Shown: piece after piece, positions 3,401-32,840 of the stretch | How positions within the stretch are numbered: the first letter of the stretch is position 1 | Layout of the letters: each line of letters begins with the position of its first letter | Source of the DNA: Bugula neritina | Lineage: Eukaryota > Animalia > Bryozoa | Assembly: GCA_964035545.1 (NCBI GenBank) | Contig: OZ037773.1 | Span: 6,415,751-6,479,750, forward strand | Length of the DNA stretch: 64,000 nt | Direction of reading: 5' to 3' | Notes under the pieces: generated by a model | Databases searched by the model: none | Told to the model about the DNA's origin: nothing | What the model saw: only the letters and a program-made list of their open reading frames with translations | Translations under genes and position numbers: made by a program

Positions 3401-6400
3401 GAAAGCTTTTGCAATAGATTTTTACTGGTAGTCAGTATAGCTCAATTGTCTTCTTGTTAAAGATGCAGGCTACTTAAACTTTATTGTTGAAATAGTTGTT
3501 GAAGTTTGAGTTTTGTGAGAGAAGTAAACTGTTGGCATTAGGCAGAGTTGTAGCCTGCTTTTGTGTCCTCCATCCATTTACCCTTCATTAAGTGAATCAC
3601 AATACATACAGCATCCGTACTGTCACAGTAACACTTATCTTGAGATAGGCATCCATGTCACACAGCATATTATATTATTATGTAATAGTTATTAATTCTT
3701 ATCAAAGAATTACCATGGTGTAGTCTAACAATACAATAAATGCTATTTCATAGACACACAGTAGCACTTAGTGTAGCTGTTTCTATGAATATTATAATGA
3801 TGTAATGTACACCTGATTTTAGCTTGCCACTAGAGAAGTATTCATAAATTGCATACCAACTGATAAGGCAACTTAACAAACCTTATCTAGATAAAATAAA
3901 AAGATGCAACATAACATCGACTCAACCTTCGTTCTAAAACTTTGCTAATACACATAAACAGCTATAGACTCTTCAACACAGTGAGCTAAAAGCTAAAATG
4001 TAGGGATTGAAACAAGTTCATGAGGAGGTAATTTCTTTTGTTGAATTCTTTATGCAACACGAGCTTTTCCCAATATTTTTCCATTACAGAATTTAACTGG
4101 TGGTGGTGGATGGTGGAACCAAGAGCTGTACCAGTTTACACTACGGACCCCAGCATCCAAGGACTGATGGCAATGATGTACTGTAGAGAAGTTCCCATCA
4201 GTCAAGACTTCATACTAACCTCCAAGCGGTCACCACTGGTAACTGGGTGTAGATACACCCAGGCTAATAGTATGAGGATCTATGGGTTGATCACCCAGAC
4301 AACAATCCATCCAGAAACGTGACACTCTGAGAGGGCGAATTACTCGGCCAGTCACTGCGACTACTGAACTGCTGTGCTCGTCCTGGACACTCCTTGCCAG
4401 CACAGCGTACTTCTTTAGTGGAGAGGGGTGCTTAAGCAACTGACAAAACCCTAAGTATCCTTAAACTTCTTGTCAGCATAACCCGATTGAATCATGAAAA
4501 GAAAAATGAACACGAAATCATACTGGCAGGACGTCGCCCAGGATAAAAAGGTCCAAATTTCTAAACTCAACCTTGCATCATGGAACATACGAACAATGCT
4601 AGACCGGGAGAGCACAGAAAGACCTGAGAGAAGGAGTGCAATCATTTCATCTGAACTACAGAAGTATGGCATCGACATTGCAGCACTGAGTGAAATCAGA
4701 TTCAAAGATACAGGTAAAATTCGTGAAGAGTCAGGCTACACCATTTACTGGAGTGGCAAAACTGCATCTGAGCGCAGTGAGTCAGGCGTGGCCCTTGCTA
4801 TCAGGAACGAACTTGTTTCGAGACTAATCGAAGAGCCGAAGGCTATAAGCGACAGACTGATGTCACTCAGGGTTCCTCTGTCTGATGAGCGATGGTGCAC
4901 TGTGATAGCTGTCTATGCTCCCACGATGACAAACAGCCAAGAAAACATCAACAGATTCTATGACCAACTGAATCAGGCTCTAAGATCAGTCCCAGCAGCT
5001 GATAAGATCTTACTCATGGGGGACTTCAATGCTAGGGTTGGACAAGATCACTCAACCTGGCCCGGTGTGATAGGCAAGTATGGCTGCGGAAACCTGAACT
5101 CCAATGGTGAACTTCTGATCTCAGTCTGTAGTGAACATCAACTGTGCATTACCAACACCTTCTTCAAGCATAAACCAGCTCACAAGTTCTCTTGGATGCA
5201 CCCGAGAAGCAAGAACTGGCATCTCATCGACTTTGTTATTACACGACAACGTGATCTACCAGACATTCTAGACACAAGGGCGATGAGAGGGGCGAATTGC
5301 AGTACTGACCACATCATGATCAGGTCAAACGCTAAGCTCCGAGTGAGGAGAAAAATGAAGAAAGGGAGAACACCTTGCCAGAAGCTGGACGTTTCTCGAC
5401 TTAAGAATGAGGAAGTAAGACAAGAACTGGAAAAGTCCCTTGCTGGGAAACTGAACTCTGCTCCAGAGGGCGTGGAGAGTAAGTGGAGAGCATTCAAAGA
5501 GATAGTTTATGCAGAGTCAAAACTGCACCTCGGCACTGTCAGCAGGAAACATGAGGACTGGTTTGACGAGAATAATGATGAGCTTCAAGAACTCATCCAG
5601 AAGAGAAACAAGGCCAGAACAGACATGTTAACCAGGAATACTCGCTCGAACAAGTCAAAGCTTAGAATGGCTGGCAGAAAACTCACAGGAAGATGCAGGG
5701 AGCTCAAGAACGACTGGTGGTTGGCAAAAGCTGCTGAACTGCAACGGTTTGCTGACACCAACGACATGAAAGGCTTTTACCAAAGCATGAAAACTGTTTG
5801 GGGTCCAGGAGTGAGTCATCCTGACCAGCTCCTGGCCAGTGACAGCTCAACACTCCTGACAGAAAAACAAGATCTTCTAGCGAGATGGACAGAGCATTTC
5901 AGCAAGCTACTAAACGAGACTCCAGATATTGATGACAACATCATTGAGAACCTGAGACAAGCTCCCATTCAGGACTGGATGGACGATTGCCCAGATATTG
6001 AAGAGATCATCAAGGCAACTTCGATGCTAAGTGAAGGGAAATCACCTGGCTCTGATGGCATTCACCCGGAGGTTATCAAAAGGGGAGGGCCCAAACTAAT
6101 AAGTACTCTCCATGAGATAATAAAGGAGGCATGGAAAACTGCTGTAGTCCCTCAAGATTGGAAAGATGCCCAACTTATAACCATCTTCAAAAAAGGTGAT
6201 CGGAAGCTGTGCGGTAACTACAGAGGTATCTCCCTGCTCTCAATTCCCGGTAAAGTTTTTGCTCGTGTCCTTCTGAATAGACTGACATCATATGCAGAAA
6301 ACATCCTACCCGAAACTCAGTGTGGATTCCGTAGTGGAAGGGGAACAGCAGATATGATATTTGCACTGAAGCAGATACAGGAAAAATGCATCGAGCAAAA

Positions 6401-7960
6401 TATGCCCCTGTACATGGTCTTCATTGACTTCACCAAAGCGTTCGATACTGTTGATCGGGCGACCCTGTGGAAGATCTTACAGAAACTCGGTTTTCCTAGT
6501 CACTTCACCAATCTTATCAGCGCTCTCCATATTGGCATGAAGGCCTCAGTCAAGCTGAAAGGGGAGTTATCTGAGTCGTTCCAAGTCAACAATGGTGTGA
6601 AACAAGGATGTGTGTTGGCTCCAACGCTATTCTCTATTTTCTTATCGGCTGTTCTACAGCACGCATTTGAAAACTGTGATAAAGGCGTCTGGATTCAAAG
6701 TAGACCTGGAGCTGATCTGTTCAATGTGAACCAATACAAGTCAACAACAAGAACACAAAAAGTATTGGTTAGAGAACTCATGTTTGCTGACGACACTGCC
6801 TTCGTTGCACACAGCCATGGCGATGCACAGGAATTAGTCAACAGATTCGCCAGAGCTTCCAAAGCTTTTGGTCTGAAGATCAATATCAAGAAAACGGAAA
6901 CGCTCTACCAACCGGCACCTGGAGCCCATGACAGTGGTGACAGTATCTGCATAGATAATGAAGACCTTGCCAACGTTAATAGGTTTAAATATCTTGGGTC
7001 TACAGTGATGTGCAACAACAAGATGGATGAAGAGATTCATACAAGGATGTCCAATGCTTCAATCTCATTCGGCAGACTAAAGACCAAAGTGTGGTACAAT
7101 AAGGATCTGTCATTCAAGACCAAGTGTACAGTGTACAGAGCCATTGTCCTGTCCTCTCTGCTCTATGGAGCGGAGGCCTGGCCTGTATACAGGATAGCCG
7201 CTCACAAATTCAACACCTATATGATGAGACATCTACGCCAGATCTTGAACGTGAAGTGGTGGGATTTCATCTCGAATGAGGAGACTCTAGCACAGACAAA
7301 TCTACCCAGCATGTACGAACTACTCATTCACAAAAACCTGAGATGGGCTGGTCATGTGCATCGAATGGATAACTCTAGATTACCTAAGCAAATTCTCTAT
7401 TCACAACTGAAAGAAGGCACCCGTGGTGTTGGCAGGCCGCGACTGAGATTCAAAGATACCGTTAAACGCAATCTAAAAGCTCTGAAGATCCCTATTGGTA
7501 GCTGGCAATCTCTCAGCAAAGACAGATGTAAATGGAGGACCATGATTCACCGGAAGTCATCTTCGGACACGAAGGACAGCTAATGATGAATGAATGAACA
7601 GAATTTAACTTTTATGAAATGCTGGGTATTATAATAGAAACAACCTAGCTTTCAACATATACAGATGCGAGGTTTGATATTTTGACTTATAGCAACTTTA
7701 ACCGAACTTTTATAAAAGAAATGCTTTTTTAGTTATTCATTTACAATAGAACTTTCTACCCACAATAATTGTTTCATTTCACCTCCTAACTTTGAACTGT
7801 ATTAATACAAGAATAATGCTGATCTATAAATAACACATCTTTACTCAACTACCTTGAATATCCTTGGAAATATATTGTAATAACCTGACTGTACGAAAGT
7901 CTGTCCACTTACACATTGTCCTTCCGGCAGCCCACAGGGGGAGGCGTAATCTGCTGCCAT
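418..7960 (-). CDS. cAMP receptor-like (CrlA/GPR157-type) 7TM receptor, 5' part; possibly a pseudogene, continues off the window's left edge
   Basis: GT-AG exons: 7913-7960 (MAADYASPCGLPEGQC), 3064-3171 (DKLQVMKHVLFSINIVVVSLTLILLFILQKYKFFNQ, TM1), 805-871 (HDGDIGINDSRCIAQAFFIQAF) and 418-505 (DLCVFLWIGSLTIFLFLKLIKSKDSERFE, TM3). Phases match within the pairs 7913-7960/3064-3171 and 805-871/418-505. The C..QA.F.Q.FD....LW...T motif and the KY.FF.Q end of TM1 resemble animal CrlA-like GPCRs. The only TM2 candidate (about 2362-2436, ILLGVDLAILNF/QSLGYLA) needs a frameshift. Confidence 0.6.
1238..1540. repeat. degenerate tandem repeat (GTAAATACATATACTTACCCCTAA-like units)
   Basis: Recurring AGTAAATAC..ACTTAC motifs. 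TAGACAATTGAACTGAGTAAAT occurs at 1397-1418 and at 1519-1540. Confidence 0.6.
2813..2935 (+). repeat. dispersed repeat fragment (second copy about 44539-44645)
   Basis: Both loci share TTTTGCTACATTTCTAATCTAGAACACA, plus flanking GTTGAAATTCT and CTGCACCTAT. Confidence 0.7.
4099..4277 (+). ncRNA. HDV-like self-cleaving ribozyme at the RTE 5' end
   Basis: P1 GGTGGTG (4099-4105)/CACCACT (4231-4237) with a G1-U wobble; P2 CTTCATACTA (4208-4217)/TAGTATGAGG (4268-4277); P3 ACC (4218-4220)/GGT (4228-4230); L3 TCCAAGC; P1.1 CC/GG (4238-4239); P4 CTGGGTGT/ACACCCAG; J4/2 GCTAA with putative catalytic C4264. Confidence 0.88.
4494..7583 (+). CDS. RTE ORF: AP-endonuclease + reverse transcriptase (1029 aa, intact)
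   Basis: APE motifs (SWNIRT, ALSE, GDFNARVG, IDFVI, STDH), RT motifs (NYRGISLL, QCGFR, FIDFTKAFD, GVKQG, FADD, FKYLG) and an RTE-type C-terminus (LRWAGHV, GRPRLRFKD). Confidence 0.97.
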   Translation: MKRKMNTKSYWQDVAQDKKVQISKLNLASWNIRTMLDRESTERPERRSAIISSELQKYGIDIAALSEIRFKDTGKIREESGYTIYWSGKTASERSESGVALAIRNELVSRLIEEPKAISDRLMSLRVPLSDERWCTVIAVYAPTMTNSQENINRFYDQLNQALRSVPAADKILLMGDFNARVGQDHSTWPGVIGKYGCGNLNSNGELLISVCSEHQLCITNTFFKHKPAHKFSWMHPRSKNWHLIDFVITRQRDLPDILDTRAMRGANCSTDHIMIRSNAKLRVRRKMKKGRTPCQKLDVSRLKNEEVRQELEKSLAGKLNSAPEGVESKWRAFKEIVYAESKLHLGTVSRKHEDWFDENNDELQELIQKRNKARTDMLTRNTRSNKSKLRMAGRKLTGRCRELKNDWWLAKAAELQRFADTNDMKGFYQSMKTVWGPGVSHPDQLLASDSSTLLTEKQDLLARWTEHFSKLLNETPDIDDNIIENLRQAPIQDWMDDCPDIEEIIKATSMLSEGKSPGSDGIHPEVIKRGGPKLISTLHEIIKEAWKTAVVPQDWKDAQLITIFKKGDRKLCGNYRGISLLSIPGKVFARVLLNRLTSYAENILPETQCGFRSGRGTADMIFALKQIQEKCIEQNMPLYMVFIDFTKAFDTVDRATLWKILQKLGFPSHFTNLISALHIGMKASVKLKGELSESFQVNNGVKQGCVLAPTLFSIFLSAVLQHAFENCDKGVWIQSRPGADLFNVNQYKSTTRTQKVLVRELMFADDTAFVAHSHGDAQELVNRFARASKAFGLKINIKKTETLYQPAPGAHDSGDSICIDNEDLANVNRFKYLGSTVMCNNKMDEEIHTRMSNASISFGRLKTKVWYNKDLSFKTKCTVYRAIVLSSLLYGAEAWPVYRIAAHKFNTYMMRHLRQILNVKWWDFISNEETLAQTNLPSMYELLIHKNLRWAGHVHRMDNSRLPKQILYSQLKEGTRGVGRPRLRFKDTVKRNLKALKIPIGSWQSLSKDRCKWRTMIHRKSSSDTKDS

Positions 7961-19025: not shown

Positions 19026-19752
19026 GTCGAAACAGTTGAATTCTGATAAATTAATGCCGAAACGTTTCTATGGGAAGAAGCATCTGGAGAGATACTTGGT
19101 GAATATTAATAACTGTTCATGACCTTGACAGTTCAAACAGCAAACCGATAGCGTGCATAGAAAACTAAAACTGTAATAATAAACTATGACGGTATTACTT
19201 TTGTCTCCCCATCAGTTTCCATTTACTTCTCCTTTTATACGACAATAAATTGAAAAAGGCTAAAATTAATAAAAACGTATTATGATACTCCTTATTTTAG
19301 TATCATAGAATTAATATTTTTTAATTAAAGTGGCATTAAAGTTTAAATTTGTTGGTTTAAGATTTTTAAAAACAAAAAGATGTAAAATTATATGTTTGTG
19401 TAGCATCCGATTCTTTAAGAAAAGCTGGAAAACTTTTGAGAATTAAATATAGAAGTGCACTTATAGTAAAAAGCTTTTGCATTCAAAATATAAAGTAGTA
19501 AAAAATAAAGTTGGTTTGTTCTCAATAAATTAAATATATTTTTCAAATTTTTTAATTCACATTTTTACCATATTTTTTATCAACTTTAAATTTGACCAGC
19601 AAGTTTAATTTTATTGAATGTCTTTCTGTAAACGCTTTCATGTTAGAAAAAAGTTTGCTATTTTGCTTAGTGTTCATCAAATGGGCTTAAAGCAGTAAAT
19701 AGTGGTAAATGCCTCATTATTCTATCTCCATTCAGGCTGTAATCTTTCTGCA

Positions 19753-21336
19753 TTAAAAATGTTCATAGTCTCCAGATTTTGAAGGTTTAGGTAGCCGAGT
19801 CAGAATATTGTTGCCAAAGTCAGTCATTTGAAATTGATGGCTGCAAGGATCAGTTGTTGGTGTTGTTCCTGGCGGGTCTATTTGTCTTACGTAAGGAGTT
19901 GCTGCTCTAGGAGGGGAAAGACTTCTCATTGGTGCTTGAGAACTTGTAGATATGGGCAAAGAAGTTTGTGGGTTTGCTTGGTTGGGAATTCCAGGTGGGC
20001 AACCACCCATGAATGGGGCGTTTCCTTGCGTTATAGGTTGAGCTGGTTCAATGCTTCCTGAAAGTGTAGGCAGACCAATTTGGGATTGAGGGGCTTGGGG
20101 ATGGTTGCTAGTAGATCTTCTAAGGAATAAATTTGTGCTTAGATTCTGGTTAAATTGTATGTTATAAATAAGTATTGAAATCATTGCCGCAAACTGGTCC
20201 GCTTCATAAAAATTGCCATAACGCTTTTTCAAAGCTACATCGCAGGAATTATTCGTACGAGACACAGCTATTCGGTTTTTTGTGTAGTCTTTGTAGAAGT
20301 TAGTACAAATGTAGCCAGTGCAATCAGTTTCTGTTCTGCTATATAAAACAAGATAGTCAGAAATGTTGGTATATGTCATTTCGTCATAAGATGAGCATCT
20401 ATTGTAGCAAAGTTGACCCACCAACTGAACGCGATTGATGTACAATTCAAATACATTTGGATTGTTAGTATAACTGAGGTGAAACAACTCCATCTCCCTT
20501 TCATTAGTTGCTTGTAACATTACACTGCTGTCTATGTTAGTATTAATAATCAGCTGGTGTTGATTGTCACCGCTTGTGAGATTGTAAGATGGCTGCCACA
20601 GGTTTGTTCTATCTGTGTGCTGCCTTGCTGTTAAATTGAAAAAAGCACCTCTATTTGCTGCTATACCCTTTAAAAGCTGATACGCATAGCTGTTAGGAAA
20701 AGTAATGAATTCGTTGTCGGCAAACTGCATGCCGCTTCGTTTGTTAGAATAAAGGTTCCAAAAAGCTAGAAACATAGCGGACATCATAATAGTTGGTGTT
20801 TGACACTTATACAAGCTGGTGCAGTACGCCTGCTTTACAGGCTCGTTACAATGAGGTGTAGGAACTTTTATTAGGAGCTGATTACTTGGTACCAAAACTA
20901 TAGAAAGTTCGTTTTGTGGATCTCGTATCACTTTAGCAAATGAAACTCGTGCCATATCGTCTGCTCTATGGATAGTCATCGTGCTTTTTCTGTTGTCCCT
21001 TTCCACATCTCTTTCGTCATGTTCGACCGTCCTATACAACATCAGCCAGTCAGTTACTTGTGACATCTTAGCTACAGTCATATACCAATTCCTTTCACCA
21101 CTGGCATAAAACCGGAAGGATGGTTTCAGATTGTCATATTCCACTCGAAAATACTTTTTGGTTGCACAGTATTTATTGGTTGCAATTACTTCAAAATACT
21201 GCTTGCCTTCTAGACTGGCTCCATACTTCTTGAATTCTAATAGATCACAATCTTTGAACATATAGTGAATAGTTTCCTCGGCGTTGTGTTCAATGTAACG
21301 CTCATGATGAGTTGCAGGGCCTGCTGCAGTAGCCAT
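19753..21336 (-). CDS. uncharacterised CDS-intronless protein (527 aa from first ATG); putative tandem scramblase/Tubby-like domains plus P/S/T/Q-rich tail
   Basis: 1.6-kb open frame in AT-rich DNA, first ATG at 21334-21336 (MATAAG...). Shares colinear motifs with ORF 29638-30942. The fold call is inference only. Confidence 0.8.
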   Translation of the reverse strand: MATAAGPATHHERYIEHNAEETIHYMFKDCDLLEFKKYGASLEGKQYFEVIATNKYCATKKYFRVEYDNLKPSFRFYASGERNWYMTVAKMSQVTDWLMLYRTVEHDERDVERDNRKSTMTIHRADDMARVSFAKVIRDPQNELSIVLVPSNQLLIKVPTPHCNEPVKQAYCTSLYKCQTPTIMMSAMFLAFWNLYSNKRSGMQFADNEFITFPNSYAYQLLKGIAANRGAFFNLTARQHTDRTNLWQPSYNLTSGDNQHQLIINTNIDSSVMLQATNEREMELFHLSYTNNPNVFELYINRVQLVGQLCYNRCSSYDEMTYTNISDYLVLYSRTETDCTGYICTNFYKDYTKNRIAVSRTNNSCDVALKKRYGNFYEADQFAAMISILIYNIQFNQNLSTNLFLRRSTSNHPQAPQSQIGLPTLSGSIEPAQPITQGNAPFMGGCPPGIPNQANPQTSLPISTSSQAPMRSLSPPRAATPYVRQIDPPGTTPTTDPCSHQFQMTDFGNNILTRLPKPSKSGDYEHF

Positions 21337-22443
21337 TTTTACTTTCTTTTTTTTAGTGACAATTGCAAAAAAATGAAACCACAATACATTTCAAAGCATA
21401 TTTGAGAATTTTAAAATTCTTTTCTTGATGTAATTCAAATTTAAAAATAACTCTTGTCAATATAATATAATTAGTTTTTAATTATCTTGAAATTTTAGAG
21501 TTGTGTATGTTTTCAGAACTTTATGTTTTTCTTTGCTTATAAAAACCTTATATTAAATTAATTAAACAAATTAATCATATTATAAGTAATGCAGTCATTT
21601 TTTGAGCAATACACAAACAACTATTATATATTGTATCAGTATTTAATAAATTAATAATAATAATAATATAACTTATAACTTATATATATATAATAATAGT
21701 TTAATAATTTATATTTGATAAAAATGTTTTATTCTAAAACGATATAATTAATGACAATACTCTGTTGAAATAAAAATTGATGAGTAAATCTAATTCATTT
21801 ACGCTGCCAGGCAAACTTCAGTTTATCTAGAAAATAAACCCTTTGAACTATAATGGCCTATAGGACAGTAAAACCGACATAATCCTGCCTTTTCAGAACA
21901 ATTTTATGAACTGCAATGGCCATACATTACCTAGTGGTTTCAAGGTGTGAGCATTTTAATACTAGTCTCAATACTCACTTACATGTCTACCTATGTCCTA
22001 CTTAATATTAAATTATTTACTAGGATGAATTATATGCTAGAAGAATTTGCTGTTGATAAATAGTAGCATGGTTCTATATAATATAGTTTTGGCTTTATTT
22101 TGTGCTATAATGAATGAGAAGTGTTGATTAACTTTTTGGAAAATATATTTCCAGACATTACATATTTAATAAATTATTAGAACTGAGTTTACAAAACTTC
22201 TTAAATTATATTACAGTCAAAAAAAATAAAGCACTGGGGGCTCACAAATTTTAGATTTATGTTTTCAACATCTATTGAAAATAATATTATATTGGTGAAT
22301 GAAAAAATTGTTGATGTTAATAACTTCAAGTGATGAAAAAATTCAACTTCAATTAGTAAGTTTTAATATTGTTGTGTACTTTTACTTTACCGAGATAAAT
22401 TATTTAAAACAATTGTTAAAATTCAATCTACTTTGAGTTGTCT

Positions 22444-23758
22444 TCACATGTTAGCTAAAGTCATTGCTCTGATGTCTATGCGCCTTTTTAGCACATTCAA
22501 TCTCTGTTGAGGCGTATTCAGTGTTGTCCTGTCCCCTACAGCAAAAAAAGTTATAATTCAGGACTGAGCAATAGAAGCACCTCTGCAAAGTATTTAAAAA
22601 ACCTTCTATATATAGTAATGCAAAAAGTCTAACAGATTATTTAGATTAAAACATTTGGCAAGCAATTCAATAACTTCAATAACAATAAATAAATCATTAT
22701 AGCAAACAAGTCCTTTTATTATCATATAAAACTTGCTGTAAAGAACCACATGTTGACATTTGCTAAAGTTATTTGAGGATACTTACCTGGGTAAATGTGA
22801 AGTCTTCCAGGGCCTATCTGCGACTTATACCAACCCTTGGGGGCCGTATTGTTTGCTGGAGCCCATGATCGAGATTGAGTGAGTCTTTGTTCCCGAAAGA
22901 ACATTCTTTGAAAACTGCGTTTTGGTTCACTTAGCACTGGAACTGGCTTCATTTGACTAGTGGTATCTACAATCAAACCATATACAGTAATCTTTTAATT
23001 GTAGATATGTACTTTAGTATAAATATTAGTTTATTATCAACTAAAGAATTCATAAAAAAATATGTTTGTATAATTTAAAACCAGCAGTTAAATCTATCTT
23101 TCATAAAATAAGCCCTATAAATGGAGAATGAGTCATTATAGCTTTTCACCTACTTAAAAACTTAAACTGCTTTTCAGGCTGTGAGTTATGCAGCTGTCAC
23201 CAGTTTACAAAAGTTCCCTCTATAGCTTTTCATTAAAAATATTTAAAGTTTGTTTTTAATTACTTCAAAAGTATATCATTTTTTTCAATAAGAGGTTTAG
23301 AATTAATTAAAGCAATTTTGGAGTTCACAGTGTAAGGTTAATTACTTCACTGTATTTGTTGATAAATTGTATTCAATTATATTCTAGTTTCTAACAAAGC
23401 TGATAGGACAAACACCTCAGCATAAATTGCTTATTTAACTCATAGATATACTAGATTGTATATGTCCTAGAAAGCTATACCGCTTTATGTAATATACTAC
23501 TAAATATAATATGTACTCAAATAAGAAGGAAATTCAATTGGTATATACCATGGTGGGAAAGCTCCCTGTGACATGGTTTCATCATGGAGCCCTGCAGTTG
23601 TTTAATATGTGTCTACAAATAGAAATGCTTAATATAGCAATCCGCATTTCATTTAGATGTGTGGTGTGTAGCGTTTATGTGATGTGTGTGATGTGTGTGA
23701 TGTGTGTGATGTGTGTGATGTGTGTGATGTGTGTGATTGTGTGTGATTGTGTGTGCGT

Positions 23759-23805
<47 letters not shown>

Positions 23806-26800
23806 AGCATATAGTAGCATAATGTCTAAACTAAGTCCAATTATCCTAATCACTTAGTCAATATAAATGTGTGAGGTAATCATGTATATATTCATCAACA
23901 AATATTAATTTAATTTACCTGGCTAATATTTTTATCTTTTCTATCTTCCGTTGACATTTTAGTTTTTTCATTTTTTTCTAGCCTCAGTTTCCTCAACTCA
24001 CTTCTAAGCAGGAAGCCCTCAGGCTGTTTTACTCCGGAAGGGAACTGCCACCTGCCAACATTGAATGTCAAACTAAACACAAGATTTTTAGTTACAAGTA
24101 TTAGTTGCAATATATGAGGATGACATTAAAATGTGTTATACATTAGTCATTTAAATGGTAAAATATAGCCTATACTGGTTATATATTAAATATCAAATCA
24201 TTTATTAATAAATCAAAAATTTGAGTAGACTTACAAACTACTTGGTATTATTGAATTTTGTTATCTGCTTATAAATAACTTCTGTAAAGATTATAGCAAA
24301 CATATTTTTCTGTTGAAAAAAATTATTTTTCATAAAGCCTGAGAAAAAAAGAATATATTTTTAAAAGAAATTTGGAACGTATGAAATAAATACAAATTTG
24401 TAGTCATGAAATTTAAAATATGTCAGAAAAATGAAAAAAATAATCTTTTGATTTATGCATAAAGAGTTCTCTCTGCTACTTTTTTATTGTGCTTTATTGA
24501 ACAAAAGCAATATAAAAGTTACAGAAACTTGAAACTATGCAGAAATGCTGCTCTTTGCAAAAACTTCCTTTTACATAATGATAAATTATTTAATAATAAA
24601 TTATTTAATAATAAACTATATAATATAATAATAAACTGTATGATAATAAATACATCAATATTATAATAATCTAGATGACAATAAACCGAATAATAATAAG
24701 TTACATGATAAAACTTCATATAATAAAAAAACATTTTATAATAAGCTATATGGAACTAAAGAAGAGTATGGTGGGACTAGTTGAACCAAAAATTGCATAA
24801 TATATAATTATATAATGATAAATTACATAATAATAAACTATTTTTAAGTTTAAAGTGACTGTAGTCTCTATAAATGTACTCTATACTACTATACCCACAG
24901 AGTATTAATAAAACTTACTTTGTGGGTATCACTGCCATAGTTCCGTCTCCGGGGCGTCTCCAGGATCCATCAACACTTGTTTTAGTCATAGTAATGCCGT
25001 TGATTCTCGGTCTAAACTCATCTAATCTCACACAGTAGTCACTTTCATACACTGTTCCAGCTGCTCTTGGCCTGCAACAAAGTTTCAAATTGATATGAAA
25101 TTTGTGCATGCATGGGTGTCGTTAGGTTATATGAACTCTGCAAGTATGTGCATTGCTTAGTATAAACTCTGCATGTATTTGCATGCTAGATTACAAACTC
25201 TGTGTGTATACATTGCATTATGGCATCAAAGATATTTCCATATTTGCATTATCTAATAATTTGACTAAAATATACTCTCAGAAGAAAGTGGCATTTAGTT
25301 GTGATTCAATCTTCATAAAACATACAAAAAAATAGAGCCAAAAGAGTTGTGTTGTTTCTAGTTGAAACATTTAAAAATATTGCTAAATAAATATTTTAAA
25401 TTGTAGGTTTGTGAAATTACTTGACTTTTGTTAACACTACGACTCTGCAATCTTTCTGTTACATATATACTGTATTATAGTAATGTGTTTTATGCATAAG
25501 AAAATTATTTATTGCTTTATGTAGTTATTTGTAATTATACTCTTAATAGTATAATATTAAGTGAGGAAATAGAATCATTTATAAACTAATGATTTTATTT
25601 TTTCACTTAATATTACATTAGTATAAGAATATTTTATTGAAAAATTTATTCACAATTTTATATTACTTTTATGCCACATATACACATGATATTTAAGAAA
25701 TGTCTTTTATAACCCATTTAATATATTGTAATACAATGTTGTTGTTTTTTTAAATAAAACAGAGAAAATAATTATTATTTATGTTGTTTTGTAAGTATTT
25801 AAATAAAATGCTAGTAGAACAAAAATTATTTTTTGCTAGGTTTGTTTAAAAAATACTTTTGAAGTTGTAGCAAAATTTTTACTTACGGCTCTATAAAATC
25901 AGACATGACACCTAGCCCTCCGAATCCAACTTTTTGGTGTCCGGTTTTGGGTCTATTTACAAACGACTTTTTAGACATCTCTTGCACGCCAACACTCTTG
26001 GGTCTCGACTCTGTGGGATAACTCCCCGACTCTATGTACTTGAGACCTTCTTGAGCATCTATACCCGCAATACATCTCTGCATGTTGGGAATATGTTTGT
26101 ACATCTACAATAGAAAAAATATCTTTCACATGTTGCAATAACATGACGTAAAAAGTCACGAAGGTTTACAGCCACTATCACTGTGAGAACCCCTAATGGA
26201 AAAGGTTTTTTAAAGCAGGCTAAGCACTTATTCAGATGAGACACAAGAGCATTTATGACTGGATGCTCGTCCCAGCATTACCATGGCCACCGGTGTAGTA
26301 AACCGGCCCTCTAAACCTCAGTTTTGGCTATATAAAATATTTCTAAAGCTAAATTAACCATAACTTTGAACTGGCTGATTTAATGTAAAAATTTTAATGA
26401 CTTTGATGGAACCTTGAAAAAATGGCCCAATCTAATTAATTACGAGTATTTAGATAGATTTGTTGTTTGATGAATGGAACATATTACTTGTATATCGACT
26501 CCCCATCTGATTGGCTGATATTAGTTGCTATAACCCCATGAACTTAACCTTATAACTGCATAAATTATTGTCAGCAGATTCTAGCTCTGCTGTATAGCAA
26601 AGTCAGCATAAGAAGTCTAAACTACAAAGTGACTATACAGAAACTATAACATGAATATCAATTTTAAATATTAGGTTGGCGCAAGTTTTGACTAGCAATA
26701 TTACAATTAATATGAGTAACAATTTACAGAAATACTATGCAAAGATACTAGTGTTTATATTTGCTTAGCTTAAAAATTTACTGATAAATTTGAAATTGAA

Positions 26801-27500
26801 AACACAATTGTAAATCCACAGAAAAAGTTTTGGGTTTTAAACTGAACCTTTCAAAATGTCATTATGAAATGCATTGCCAAAAATATTTAGCATTTATTAC
26901 TTTCTATTAATATTACATCTATTTCTGAGCTCGACCACATATTCATATATTAGCAGACTTACTGCATCGTAAGCCTCCAACCGGTGGCCATATTTTTTCT
27001 TCCAGTTTTCGGCAGCATGCCTCTCGCTGTCGACACACTCTTTCCTGCAGGAAAGTTATCATATACTGTGCAGTTATATGCATTTAGTTTATTACAATGT
27101 AAGTTGCATAATCTACCCCCCCCCCCCAAACTTTGATAGAAAGGAGCTAAAGACTGTGTGGTACATGAGCAATTATGACTGAATGCTGTCTCTAACATCA
27201 CCAATGATCTTTGCTGGGGTTCGAACCTATGAGTTCGTGTTTAGTAGGCAAACACTTTAGCCCCTAAACCACGGTTGCTCCCTATTAATTCAACGCATGC
27301 ATGTGCAGAAAGTGTAATATAAAACCCGACATGTTTGGACATGCCTGGACATGCCTCGACATGCCTGGACATACTACTCTGAAATTGTATTTAGCTGATA
27401 GCCAAGATCTATTTTGATAACTTATAAACCGATACTCTATACCTAAGCTGGAATACCTGTAAAACTCCTTTTCATTCGCTGTCATTTCTGCTGCTGGCAT
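22444..27500 (-). CDS. uncharacterised 8-exon protein (about 314 aa), weak resemblance to ciliary microtubule-inner-protein (LLC1/CIMIP1-like) N-terminal motif
   Basis: Exons 27457-27500, 26963-27044, 25887-26104, 24919-25071, 23919-24051, 23549-23591, 22787-22966, 22444-22535 all join in phase with GT-AG. Starts MPAAEMTANEKEFYRKECVDSERHAAENWKKKYG and ends ...IRAMTLANM*. Confidence 0.75.
23677..23804. repeat. compound (GATGTGTGT)n/(GT)n microsatellite
   Basis: Directly visible tandem units. Confidence 0.95.
26165..26290 (-). mobile_element. tRNA-derived SINE, body/tail without head
   Basis: Matches 28755-28890 (GTGAGAA.CCC, AAAGGTTTTT, GCTAAG.ACTTATT, TATGACTGGATGCTC). Confidence 0.75.
27167..27282 (-). 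mobile_element. tRNA-derived SINE, 5' half
   Basis: Reverse complement starts GGGAGCAACCGTGGTTTAGGGG, has B-box GGTTCGAACCC, then GGTGATGTTAG. Confidence 0.8.
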
Positions 27501-28754
27501 GATTGTGCAGATGAGGCAGTTGTTGATGTTAGTATTAAATGAATAGCGCAAGTTTAACTAGTGCCTGAAGCTCAAATACAAATTGTGTTTCTGATCAATA
27601 CACTCTAAGTGATAACATGCAAGTGCAAAGTGTGCTAACTATCAACACTGTTATACAACAACTCATTATCCAAGTTTCTTTTGTTTATCTTTGAATGAAA
27701 TTTAATCTAAGCACTTTGTTTGGAACAATAGTAGCTATGGAGAGTTTGAAACCAATCAGCAGCGCTGACTTTATACTTTACTTTACTCAGGCCGCCACAA
27801 AAGCTACTTAGTGCATTAGTTTTATTTTCAATTGTTGATTTGACTACCTTGATAAAACATGCTATTGAATTTTTGTTTGCAATTTAGTTTTATGATGGCT
27901 AATGGAATATACAATATACTGCATGTATTATAATAACAAAAATGTTGACTGAATAGAAATTAATGTCTCCAATACTAAGTTTTTTTGACAAGTACAAGAA
28001 ATTTATAATATAAATCATGCATTTTGCTTGTCCTGAGAGACTGAATAAGATTATGGAGCAGTTTTAGCTTGAAACTGTAGCTGGTACATACCAGTAGTCA
28101 TTTTGAAATGTTGTCCAGTCAGGTAGAGTCTTTATAGCAGTGCCAAACGCAAATGCTGCCATAGCTATCCTATTAAAAAAATGCATTGATTCATTTTGAA
28201 AAATAGTTTTATTGCCAATATGACGGAAAAAATTCTTTAGTAAGAAAAACTAAATCAGAAATTAAAAGAAAACTGAAGGAGCAATTGTTGGCATGATGAT
28301 ACGATAAGCTACAAAATATTAATTAAATTAATTTGAAAATTTTGAAAACTATGGTTTGATGACAGAGAATTGTGTTTACATTGACATTTAGAAATAACAG
28401 GAAATAATAAAAGACACAGCCAATTTTCAACTCTTACAAATAACTGTATTTTGCTTGCTTGCTACTCTAAAGTCTTCTGCATGATTGTTGTAGATCAGTA
28501 ATATAGGCTTGCATGTATTGGTGATTGGGTTTTATCTGCTGTGTTTTATGCTATATTTTTCAATAAAATTTTACCAGTGTGTTTCTGTATTAATATGTTC
28601 AGGGCTGTTGTTGAGGCCTCACAGTGTCTCCAGATGCACTCTTGTAACTGGTCATCAGCGTACCGAGACGTTGCCCACCTGTGATTGACAGCAAAGGTTG
28701 GCCAACCAAATTTGCTTATGATAAATTTAATACACTCAATAACTCTTCTCACGA

Positions 28755-28959
28755 AACTTTGTAGTCACTATGCCTGTGAGAAACCCCTTATAGAAAGGGT
28801 TTTTGTTAAAGTGGGCTAAGGACTTATTTAAATGGGGCACAGGAGCAATTATGACTGGATGCTCTTCCTAACATCACCGATGGCCTTTGTCAGGGCTCGA
28901 ACCCATGACCTTCGTGTTTACTAAGTAAACACTCTAACCCCTAGACCACGGCTGCTCCC
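28755..28959 (-). mobile_element. tRNA(Thr-like)-derived SINE, near full length
   Basis: Reverse complement: GGGAGCAGCCGTGGTCTAGGGGTTAGAGTGTTTACTTAGTAAACACGAAGGTCATGGGTTCGAGCCC (A-box, AGT anticodon-like loop, B-box), followed by a body shared with other copies. Confidence 0.85.
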
Positions 28960-29637
28960 TTCAATATTAACCCTTCTAAGAGTTATGAAGTTTCAAAAAC
29001 AAGATCTTTATCTCTTTTTTTTAAAATTATAAGTGCAGTACCATAGTGGCACATTGAGAAATAAGCCTATGATAATAACCTATATGAAATACACATACTA
29101 TCATATTTCCAAGAGTTGCCCTACTATAGCAGATATAGCTACACGCAGCCAACAGATACAAACTCTGACGGACCTAGTGGGCGGTCTCTTGCATCTTGAA
29201 GCTTCAGCGAGTAACTACTATAATGTGGTAAGTATTCTGGAATATTTCAAAATCAATGCTACAGTTACTATATTGACATAAAATTGTATCAAATCATTAA
29301 GTTCAAGTATTTTTTAAAATTATTTTTGTAAAGAGCATAATTATATTTTCATTTTTCTGTTTGACTTTATAAATAGTAAATACTGAGCAAAATATAAATC
29401 CCCAGTAAAAAAAAACAAATTATTTTTGGGGTGGTCTATAATTTTCATCATGACTGCATACATACAAGATGAAAACAAAATAATATTACAAATCAACGTC
29501 TTTTTATATAAAAATATTTTATGGCTAGCATTGTTGAAGATACTTACAGTGCACACTATAGATGCATACACTAAATAGCTCAACATATTTTGAATGATTA
29601 AAATGTTTTAAGGACAGTACTGGTCAGCAGTGGCACA

Positions 29638-30942
29638 ATGGCTGCAGCTGCCATGGCACGTGTTGCTGGCACGAGTGCGGCTATATCTGGTTCTGTGTAC
29701 AACTCTGCTGCAGCACTGGAGAGTGAGGAAGGATGGGGCTGGTCCCCGGATGAGAGAATAACAGGCTTTGCAGGTGATGCGTCTCTTTTGAGATTTGGTC
29801 AAATTGGCGTGAGCCTAGGGCAAAAAGAATACTACAGAATAAAAGTGTATAATGCTCCAAATAATTATAAAAGCTATTACATCAAAACTCTTCAAAGACC
29901 TTTACAGGAGATGATATTTTTTGCAAAGCGTCCAAACCATCATTCATCGTTGAGTACTACTGTGTCGCTGACGAAACAGTCTCGTGGTGGTGGTTGGATG
30001 CTACGAGTCTTTCCTATTACTGTCGACCAGGAGGTTGATTGCAGAAGGGCTGTGATAAAAGAACACGTGGCACTGGATAGGGCATCAGGGAATACGATGC
30101 TGAGATTTGTAAGCAGAGAGCAGGAGAAAATCGAAATTATCTATGCAAGGACTAAGGAACTCTTGTGCACCATTAATTTTAGAGAAATGTCTACGTCTCT
30201 CACCGAAAGTTATAAAAAGAAAAACCCCAATGTTATGATAACGTGCATTGCATCAGCGTTCTTGTTGACTTACCTTAGTACAATGTCGGCACTAAAATTC
30301 AAACCTAATGCTTTTCCTCCAGTTTTTACCGGGCGTGCTATTACCAGATTGAAGGCAATATGCAGCCGAAACGAGACAAATAGTCTCTTTTTAAAAAAAA
30401 CTGATGCATCAGATTCTGAAGAATTGATTTATGGACTAGAAACTCACCTAAAGAAAAAACTACTTGATATTTCTGTAAAGAAATATACTGCGTTGAGCAC
30501 CATTGAGATAACTGGTTGTGAAATAGAAAATGATATGTTTGTAGCTGAAATTTTTCACCTTCAAAAAAATGAAAAATTAGATAAATTTTCTATAACCCTT
30601 AATAGAACTCAAAAAACTGGGTACTTGGTCGTGTGCGACAAAACAAAACAGTTAAACTATGTTTCTTGTGATGATGACTTAATCATATCTACTGATTTGG
30701 TTCAACATTCTATACCAACATTAAAAATCTATGATAGACAATCGCAAAATTTAGCCAACGTATTTGAAAAAATTCATGATAAGGACATCAAAATAAAAAA
30801 AGCAAGAAAAAGCGAACAACTGGAGCCAGATCAACTAGCTGCGGCCATATGTATAGGAATCATTAGTCATTTACGATGTTTGCGCTGGTGGAATAATCCA
30901 TCGCTACCGGCCTGTACGCATGGAAGATATAGAACACAATAA
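29638..30942 (+). CDS. uncharacterised CDS-intronless protein (434 aa); paralog of 19753-21336
   Basis: 1.3-kb ATG-initiated ORF. Likely 5'UTR intron (donor GTAAGT about 29227, acceptor TTTTAAG about 29611). AATAAA overlaps the stop codon. Confidence 0.85.
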   Translation: MAAAAMARVAGTSAAISGSVYNSAAALESEEGWGWSPDERITGFAGDASLLRFGQIGVSLGQKEYYRIKVYNAPNNYKSYYIKTLQRPLQEMIFFAKRPNHHSSLSTTVSLTKQSRGGGWMLRVFPITVDQEVDCRRAVIKEHVALDRASGNTMLRFVSREQEKIEIIYARTKELLCTINFREMSTSLTESYKKKNPNVMITCIASAFLLTYLSTMSALKFKPNAFPPVFTGRAITRLKAICSRNETNSLFLKKTDASDSEELIYGLETHLKKKLLDISVKKYTALSTIEITGCEIENDMFVAEIFHLQKNEKLDKFSITLNRTQKTGYLVVCDKTKQLNYVSCDDDLIISTDLVQHSIPTLKIYDRQSQNLANVFEKIHDKDIKIKKARKSEQLEPDQLAAAICIGIISHLRCLRWWNNPSLPACTHGRYRTQ

Positions 30943-31734
30943 AAATTTAAAAAATATATTTTAGTTTTATATTGTCATAAAAGATAAAAATAAGAATAAT
31001 AGCTATGTTTTTTCTTTTTATTTTTAATCAAGGAAAATAAATAAATTTTATTACAACTTTAATATAACTCTACACACACACACACACACACGCATGCACA
31101 CATTTTTCAGTTTGCTTGTTGTCTGGCATTATGATATTAGGGAATATAACAATATTTTGGTATTTAAATATGTGACACATTTCTGGCCACATAGATGTGT
31201 GCATTATTGATCGAAATACTATTAGGTTGAAGGTACATATATGAGATAGTTAAAATAAGGCAATATTACCCACCTTGTAAAAATTAATTTACAGATTAGA
31301 GCAAATATTAAAAAAGTGAAAGCTTTCAAAAAAAATATAGAATTCAAAATGTTTGTGATTGTGGTTAGATATTAATTATCTAATTATATTTCTTTTCAAA
31401 TAGTAAAATGAAATAAGTTAAAATATAATTTTAGAATACTTTTTTTTTACTATAGGAGTCTATTATTTGCTTATAGGTGCAATTAGGGGAGAGTGAGTAT
31501 TGCTAACTAATAACTAATGGGAAACATCCAATCATATTTAATCTTGCATGAGATAAGGAAACTTCTTTGGCCCATGACCAATAAAATAGGTGATTTGGCT
31601 GAATTTGAATTGCAAGTATTAATTATTTAAACTGTATAAGGCTATTGATTTGATATATGAAGTTAAGGACTCAATCTGAATGTCAGGCAGAATTAGGCCA
31701 CCATTAGTTATTATTGTGTGGTGATTACTCAATA

Positions 31735-31815
31735 GCCTTATGGTAAAATATGGTTGTCACGTTTGCTTGCAAGCCAGAGGTCTCGGGTTTAAAACCCAGT
31801 GGGAGCAATTATTTT
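31735..31815 (+). mobile_element. degenerate tRNA-like SINE head (second family)
   Basis: TTGCTTGCAAGCCAGAGGTCTCGGGTTTAAAACCCAGTGGGAGC resembles a tRNA anticodon arm and T-arm, but no intact cloverleaf is seen. Confidence 0.35.
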
Positions 31816-32646: not shown

Positions 32647-32840
32647 GGGAGCAGCCATGATCTAGGGGTTAAAGCGTTTGCTTAATAAACACGAGGTTAT
32701 GGGTTCGAGCCCTGACAAAGGTCATTGGTGATGTTAGGAAAAGCATTCAGTCATAATTGCTCCTGTGCCTCATCTGAATAAGTCCTTAGCCTAATTTAAC
32801 AAAACCCTTTCCATCAGGGGCTTCTCATAGGGATAGTGAG
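32647..32840 (+). mobile_element. tRNA-derived SINE, near full length
   Basis: GGGAGCAGCCATGATCTAGGGG...GGGTTCGAGCCCTGACAAAGG...GGTGATGTTAGGAAAAGCATTCAGTCATAATTGCTCC; highly similar to the reverse complement of 28755-28959. Confidence 0.85.

Follow-up and report, generated by a model that had tools for sequence, protein, structure and literature searches.

The DNA analysed was a 64-kb stretch of a bryozoan genome (C9:6415751-6479750; hereafter the window), AT-rich animal DNA with a GC content of about 32%, which carries two intronless genes, designated A and B, of a four-member family whose proteins are very probably built of two consecutive barrels of the Tubby/LURP-one/scramblase fold. Only five open reading frames (ORFs) of at least 110 aa were present in the window, one of them belonging to an RTE-type retrotransposon, a scarcity that fits the short exons ascribed to the neighbouring genes in the original prediction. 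The original prediction for this region had pointed out two long, unbroken and divergent ORFs about 8 kb apart, and these were indeed found: genes A and B lie head to head, with their start codons separated by 8.3 kb (Table 1). The ORF of gene A, as listed from a TTG codon, spans 19753-21384 on the minus strand; translation most likely begins at the ATG at 21336, given the MA.AAG N-terminus shared by the paralogs and the Bugula neritina ortholog; this ATG is additionally backed by a Kozak-like context (A at -3 and G at +4). The space between A and B contained only short ORFs, microsatellites and copies of a short interspersed nuclear element (SINE), and scans for tRNA and Rfam families around the two genes gave no match. 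The microsatellites are of the (TG/CA)n type and occupy 23511-23853 in the intergenic space, with another at 31075-31095 just 3′ of gene B.

Genes A and B are paralogs, as their colinear motifs had led us to expect: BLASTP of A against B gave E = 7e-15, with 22% identity over 387 aligned colinear residues. Six-frame searches of the 216-Mb assembly, made in line with the original suggestion to look for more copies and for the taxonomic range, returned exactly four family members, each unbroken and intronless, the two further ones being paralogs C and D on C2. A permissive search of the genome with the family profile (E ≤ 10) gave no locus beyond these four, and no additional long ORFs were seen within 10 kb on either side of C and D. 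Near paralog C (about 2.349-2.351 Mb on C2), two stretches of about 0.8 kb are open in several frames on both strands and are presumably stop-free low-complexity repeats.

Relatives outside this genome were sought among 5.8 billion word-indexed proteins and, with HMMER, by exhaustively scoring the family profile against 1.84 billion representatives; the latter search was local and had no length filter (it returned a 64-aa fragment), and is more sensitive than the word-indexed one. Only five proteins were recovered from both, all of them either "hypothetical proteins" of B. neritina or encoded by short Logan or JGI contigs of the same species, and the profile search detected no prokaryotic or viral sequence relative among its 1.84 billion proteins. 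The family is known by sequence only from this bryozoan and B. neritina. A maximum-likelihood tree resolved four clean 1:1 orthogroups between the two, and therefore all duplications within the family are older than the split of these two bugulids, which bears out the old duplication proposed in the original prediction.

Core identity to the B. neritina orthologs was 81% for A (ortholog P0002), 62% for B (P0001/KAF6022337), 90% for C and 88% for D; the B. neritina accessions of the four are KAF6026738, KAF6022337, KAF6037259 and KAF6021839. Metagenome scans for the B. neritina loci returned none. There were essentially no indels between the species across about 400 core residues, all eight copies were intact, and the conserved hydrophobic and aromatic columns tracked the pattern of strands and helices across the family. 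In each of the four genes the ATG is flanked by A at -3 and G at +4, an AATAAA follows 87-138 nt beyond the stop codon, and the coding GC content is 39-42% against a background of 32%; the probability that such frames stay open by chance in DNA of 32% GC is about 1e-15 for 434 codons and about 1e-18 for 527 codons. Judged by the intact 1:1 orthologs, the core identity, the start contexts, the AATAAA signals, the coding GC and these chance probabilities, the four genes are real and under selective constraint. The branch lengths differ among the genes: the terminal branch of gene B measured 0.45 vs 0.11 for its B. neritina ortholog (about fourfold), and that of gene A 0.15 vs 0.056, whereas the branches of C and D were symmetric. 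This points to a lineage-specific acceleration of A and B, which may have come about by relaxed constraint or by positive selection.

Table 1. Genes of the family, their parts and candidate signals. Positions are those of the window unless a contig is named.
Feature	Position	Strand	Description and basis
Gene A	19753..21336	-	Intronless coding sequence, 527 aa + stop; two predicted barrels and disordered tail; ORF scan
Gene A, N-terminal leader, first Tubby-like barrel and central helix	20725..21336	-	Residues 1-204, by alignment to B; fold by analogy with the model of paralog B
Gene A, second Tubby-like barrel and central helix	20128..20724	-	Residues 205-403, by alignment to B; fold by analogy with the C-half model of B
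Gene A, disordered P/S/T/Q-rich tail	19756..20127	-	124 aa, ending in the conserved C-terminal motif (LPKPSKSGDYEHF); composition
Gene B	29638..30942	+	Intronless coding sequence, 434 aa + stop; two predicted barrels, no tail; ORF scan
Gene B, first barrel	29743..30285	+	Residues 36-216; about 12 strands + helix 197-212; AlphaFold2 model m45b86b3277ae
Gene B, second barrel	30310..30897	+	Residues 225-420; N-terminal helix, 12 strands, helix 397-413; AlphaFold2 model m1158b72ce814
AATAAA, candidate poly(A) signal of A	19610..19615	-	138 nt past the stop of A; weak evidence in AT-rich DNA
AATAAA, candidate poly(A) signal of B	31036..31041	+	94 nt past the stop of B; weak evidence in AT-rich DNA
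Paralog C	C2:2.35 Mb		560 aa, intronless
Paralog D	C2:26.59 Mb		533 aa, intronless

Each protein of the family consists, in order, of a short disordered leader with the MA.AAG start and a core of about 400 aa, to which A, C and D add a tail, whereas the protein of gene B has none. The tails are 124-146 aa long, rich in Q, P, S and T, disordered, and end in a conserved aromatic motif, LP.x.S..(G/Q)(Y/D)Y..F; the tail of A is 74% identical to that of its B. neritina ortholog. PPxY motifs (PPNY, PPRY) occur in the tails of C and D and are kept in B. neritina. No signal peptide was found in the family proteins, and the N-terminal part of the core (N-half) is basic in seven of the eight, with a net charge of +3 to +11.

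Structures were predicted with AlphaFold2 (AF2) for the core of B from a six-sequence alignment and for its C-terminal half (C-half, residues 225-420) alone from an eight-sequence alignment. In the core model, about 12 strands were followed by a helix (residues 197-212) and about 12 further strands by a second one (residues 397-413), in agreement with the original description of two halves of about 190 aa made of short strands, each closing with a hydrophobic helix. When modelled alone, the C-half comprised exactly 12 strands between an initial helix and a C-terminal one (the latter at residues 173-189 in fragment numbering), with a predicted local distance difference test score (pLDDT) of 76.7 and a predicted template modelling score (pTM) of 0.80. 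In a structure search of 48,161 PDB representatives by VIA-align, the N-half (residues 40-215) matched the plant LURP-one-related (LOR) protein At5g01750 (2q4m_A) with Z 12.1 and a root-mean-square deviation (rmsd) of 3.1 Å over 146 of 162 residues, and the Tubby C-terminal domain (1i7e_A) with Z 10.1 and rmsd 3.7 Å over 158 residues. The C-half gave the same two entries, At5g01750 with Z 12.3 and rmsd 3.4 Å over 151 of 162 residues and Tubby with Z 11.3, whereas the next-best matches across the halves had Z 6.7-8.9, the one for the C-half (6.7) being a designed 12-stranded barrel. Foldseek with the C-half returned a probability of 1.0 and template modelling (TM) scores of at least 0.5 only for TULP1, At5g01750 and Tub. 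Foldseek with the whole two-domain model yielded only generic beta-meander and propeller matches at a TM score of about 0.1, which were discarded as noise. Language-model features of the C ortholog P0015, which are independent of AF2, placed the LURP-one (PF04525) cluster first at 0.90 and also listed the Scramblase cluster; we count this ranking as a lead.

The Tubby-like superfamily has been defined by a 12-stranded barrel enclosing a hydrophobic C-terminal helix, which in PLSCR1 had been mistaken for a membrane span (Bateman et al., PMC2639001). In the predicted structures both halves form such a closed 12-stranded beta-barrel around a hydrophobic C-terminal helix, so the scramblase/Tubby/LURP barrel with a central helix, as originally put forward, was recovered for each half with Z 10-12 to At5g01750 and Tubby. 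The models support the view that two halves unrelated in sequence converge independently on one distinctive fold with the same strand-then-helix order; the shared fold and this order are all that tie the N-half to the C-half. It is highly probable that the four genes represent a real family with tandem Tubby-like barrels.

Sequence comparison with known families gave a different picture. Pfam and NCBIfam scans of all members returned only noise (E ≥ 0.02, scores under the cut-offs), searches of PDB by sequence with single members and with the family profile found no match, and a protein atlas search with B gave no usable match. The cut-offs of the hidden Markov models (HMMs) concerned are 24.5 bits for LOR (PF04525), 25.4 bits for Scramblase (PF03803) and 27 bits for Tub (PF01167). 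LOR was detected neither in the eight proteins (hmmscan, E ≤ 1) nor anywhere in the genome (E ≤ 10), although the search did find it in control genomes. Scramblase likewise had no match in the proteins, and its genome search (E ≤ 10) missed all four loci and hit only multi-exon loci on C3, C7, C9 (2.13 and 7.80 Mb) and C228. Tub was also without a match in the proteins, and its genome search at the same threshold missed the four loci and found one canonical Tubby gene on C1, whose domain lies in a single uninterrupted 275-aa frame (C1:11762470-11763192), plus copies in ciliate code on small contigs. The latter contigs (C44, C168, C110 and C314) have Tubby domains whose frames include numerous TAA and TAG codons, as in the ciliate genetic code, and are consistent with ciliate contamination of the assembly. 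The family could be assigned to no known family or transposon protein, with no Pfam match to LOR, Scramblase or Tub at E ≤ 10.

From the predicted fold we infer that the barrels may bind lipid. Barrels of Tubby and PLSCR are reversibly tethered to the inner membrane leaflet and are accompanied by a long disordered arm with interaction or activation motifs (PMC2639001); the combination of barrel and disordered arm is common to these proteins and to the bryozoan family, in which the arm lies at the opposite, C-terminal side. By analogy, it is conceivable, albeit tentative, that the family proteins act as bivalent lipid- or ligand-docking adaptors with a partner-recruiting tail. Such a protein would most likely be cytosolic or peripherally associated with the membrane, because it has no signal peptide and its hydrophobic helices would be buried barrel cores. 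The first barrel, usually basic, could attach to a lipid of the membrane or to some other anionic ligand, in the manner of the Tubby domain with PI(4,5)P2, and partners would be recruited by the tail, through its C-terminal motif and, in C and D, its PPxY motifs. Gene B, whose product has lost the tail, may encode a modulator lacking this part, or its constraint may have been relaxed. Taken as a whole, a constrained family with tandem Tubby-like barrels, which might serve as docking adaptors, is probably the best explanation of the data.

Several observations weigh against this interpretation: 1) the fold depends on AF2 models from only 6-8 sequences, and the model of full-length B was mediocre (pLDDT 62, pTM 0.48, several loops below 50), so that the packing of one barrel against the other cannot be read from it; 2) the halves have no detectable sequence similarity, their profiles aligning in hhalign at E = 0.15 and a probability of 0.4%; 3) no sequence or profile link connects the family with LOR, Scramblase or Tub, so that the likeness to them may reflect convergence on the fold instead of homology; 4) no basic residue is invariant across the family; 5) the PPxY motifs of C and D lie in proline-rich sequence, where they may occur by chance; 6) none of the eight proteins has a Cys cluster of the scramblase palmitoylation type; and 7) none has an acidic Ca-binding loop before helix 2, this segment being made up mainly of basic residues (K, R, Q, H) and containing one invariant Glu. 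The unrecognised double-barrel family of the original prediction stands as a four-gene sequence orphan with predicted tandem barrels, but its two halves show no sequence similarity to each other.

The shallow alignments and modest scores, the generic matches of the whole model and the silence of the LOR, Tub and Scramblase profiles would also agree with the Tubby-like barrels being a prediction artefact, the proteins then being all-beta structures of another fold such as a beta-meander, a lipocalin-like or LolA-like half-barrel or propeller-like sheets. We regard this as unlikely, since halves of unrelated sequence that were modelled separately matched the same two PDB entries over 146-162 residues, 3-5 Z units above the next match, since the C-half alone reached its high pTM and drew full Foldseek probability only from Tubby and LOR structures, and since language-model features independently put LURP-one first.

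Alternatively, the two hydrophobic helices might be transmembrane or membrane-inserting segments, which would make the family integral membrane proteins instead of soluble double barrels. The first helix of this genome's B protein reaches a Kyte-Doolittle mean of 1.66 over 19 residues, approximately the usual threshold, and the equivalent helix of PLSCR1 was long annotated in this way (PMC2639001). However, the other 15 of the 16 helices have means of only 0.3-1.2, with N, Q, H, K, R and Y among their residues, AF2 buries both helices in barrels, the equivalent helix is buried in the solved structures of At5g01750 and Tubby, and a signal peptide is missing. A membrane-spanning nature of the helices is thus quite unlikely, and soluble tandem barrels are preferred.

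As to the origin of the genes, the original prediction took the unbroken coding sequences (CDSs) as a sign of retroposition or horizontal transfer, for which we found no support. Neither A nor B has an A-tract at the 3′ end or any other poly(A) scar, flanking direct repeats, target-site duplications or terminal repeats, no intron-containing parent paralog was found in the genome beside the four intronless copies, and neither a donor nor any prokaryotic or viral sequence relative was seen among the 1.84 billion proteins. Nor is a long exon diagnostic of retroposition on its own, because the canonical Tubby domain of this genome is also contained in one 275-aa frame. Old retrocopies lose such marks, and an ancient retroposition is therefore conceivable. 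The fold is found also in uncharacterised single-domain proteins of giant viruses (TM score 0.57-0.59), with no link in sequence, and this occurrence says nothing about the origin of the family.

Capture by a mobile element would also account for the lack of introns. Intronless CDSs in an intron-rich genome, the RTE element and SINEs nearby and the giant-virus fold speak for genes that a transposon or virus once carried as passengers or that were domesticated from it, or for a recent horizontal acquisition. This is very unlikely: the CDSs of A and B are single-copy at the DNA level and have no terminal repeats, the sole inverted repeat consists of SINE copies, library scans of the members showed no reverse transcriptase, integrase or transposase domains, no sequence relative from a virus or prokaryote turned up among the 1.84 billion proteins, a second species stably retains the four-gene set as 1:1 orthologs, and the composition of the CDSs is ordinary for the host. 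That the frames are chance or decaying ones devoid of function is practically inconceivable, even with gene B evolving fast in this lineage, given p ≤ 1e-15, eight intact copies in two species with essentially no indels, and conserved columns that follow strands and helices.

A more far-reaching scenario, which we consider doubtful, is that the family arose from one ancestral intronless gene of LOR/Tubby type, retroposed or transferred from a bacterium or giant virus, and radiated in bugulids, where its domains and gene copies were duplicated again and again to give a large system, specific to the lineage and fast-evolving, perhaps for host-microbe interaction. Plant LURP1 has a role in pathogen defence, which offers an analogy for the latter idea.

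Repeats of several kinds surround gene B. The inverted repeat bracketing it was considered as a pair of transposon ends and rejected, as it represents two SINE copies that stand in inverted orientation by chance. This SINE carries a tRNA-like box and is located at 28782-28911 and 32694-32823 (also at about 31740-31800); it has at least 2,766 candidate copies, and is young, because many of them are 95-97% identical. A dispersed repeat of about 165-190 bp (29043-29232) lies about 400 bp upstream of the ATG of B and ends right at a GTAAGT. Its copies, 70-79% identical, occur on many chromosomes and often as same-orientation pairs 3.4-4.1 kb apart, so that it looks like the long terminal repeat (LTR) of an element of about 4 kb; the copy at 29043-29232 may be a solo LTR from which gene B obtains its promoter or a 5′ exon. 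For a 5′-UTR intron of B, a candidate donor lies near 29229 and a candidate acceptor, TTTTAAG|G, near 29611. Farther away, the ORF of the RTE-type non-LTR retrotransposon (4494-7583) is intact, encodes 1029 aa with Exo_endo_phos and RVT_1 domains, and coincides with a GC-richer patch.

The barrel of Tubby, scramblases and LURP-one is an ancient fold that is poorly understood, and what scramblases and LOR proteins do biochemically is still under debate. Here it would be hidden in animal orphan genes that are invisible to sequence methods, and, as far as the models go, the tandem, two-barrel and sequence-orphan form is a new variation on a known fold. If confirmed, the family adds an animal, lineage-specific branch to the superfamily and provides compact natural double-barrel proteins with which ligands of the barrel can be tested. 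It would also exemplify genes of narrow taxonomic range that go back to an ancient fold by extreme divergence and did not arise de novo.

Full-text literature searches yielded no publication on these Bugula proteins, and no description of tandem Tubby, LOR or scramblase barrels except a remark on soybean GmTLP20, for which two Tub domains are given by annotation only (PMC9083326). A tandem arrangement of Tubby type thus has a precedent; GmTLP20, however, is a canonical F-box Tubby-like protein that is recognisable by Pfam and has no sequence relation to the bryozoan family. Among known structures, LOR At5g01750 (PDB 1zxu/2q4m), the top structural match of both halves, has the same topology, with 12 strands and then a C-terminal helix inside the barrel, and is compact with few loop elaborations, as are the family halves, whereas the identity in the structural alignments is only 6-8%. 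In addition, LOR proteins are single-domain and have been reported in plants, fungi, bacteria and some archaea but not in animals, while the present family is from an animal and has two barrels per chain plus, in most members, a long disordered tail. The PLSCR scramblases, which share the superfamily fold according to homology modelling (PMC2639001), resemble the family in having a hydrophobic C-terminal helix that looks like a membrane span although burial is predicted for it, a disordered arm rich in proline, and PPxY motifs, which in the family are those of the C and D tails. Unlike PLSCR1-type proteins, the family members have no Cys-rich palmitoylation cluster, and their pre-helix segment is basic instead of acidic and Ca-binding; the canonical scramblases of this genome are multi-exon and reside at other loci, whereas the family genes are intronless. 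The Tubby domain (PDB 1i7e, 1c8z and 1s31; TULP1 2fim and 3c5n) is the second-best structural match of both halves, with a Foldseek TM score of 0.5. As in Tubby, the first barrel of the family is usually basic and is paired with a long disordered region that possibly carries partner-binding motifs (PMC2639001), but Tubby has one barrel preceded by an N-terminal arm, whereas the bryozoan proteins would have two barrels followed by a C-terminal one.

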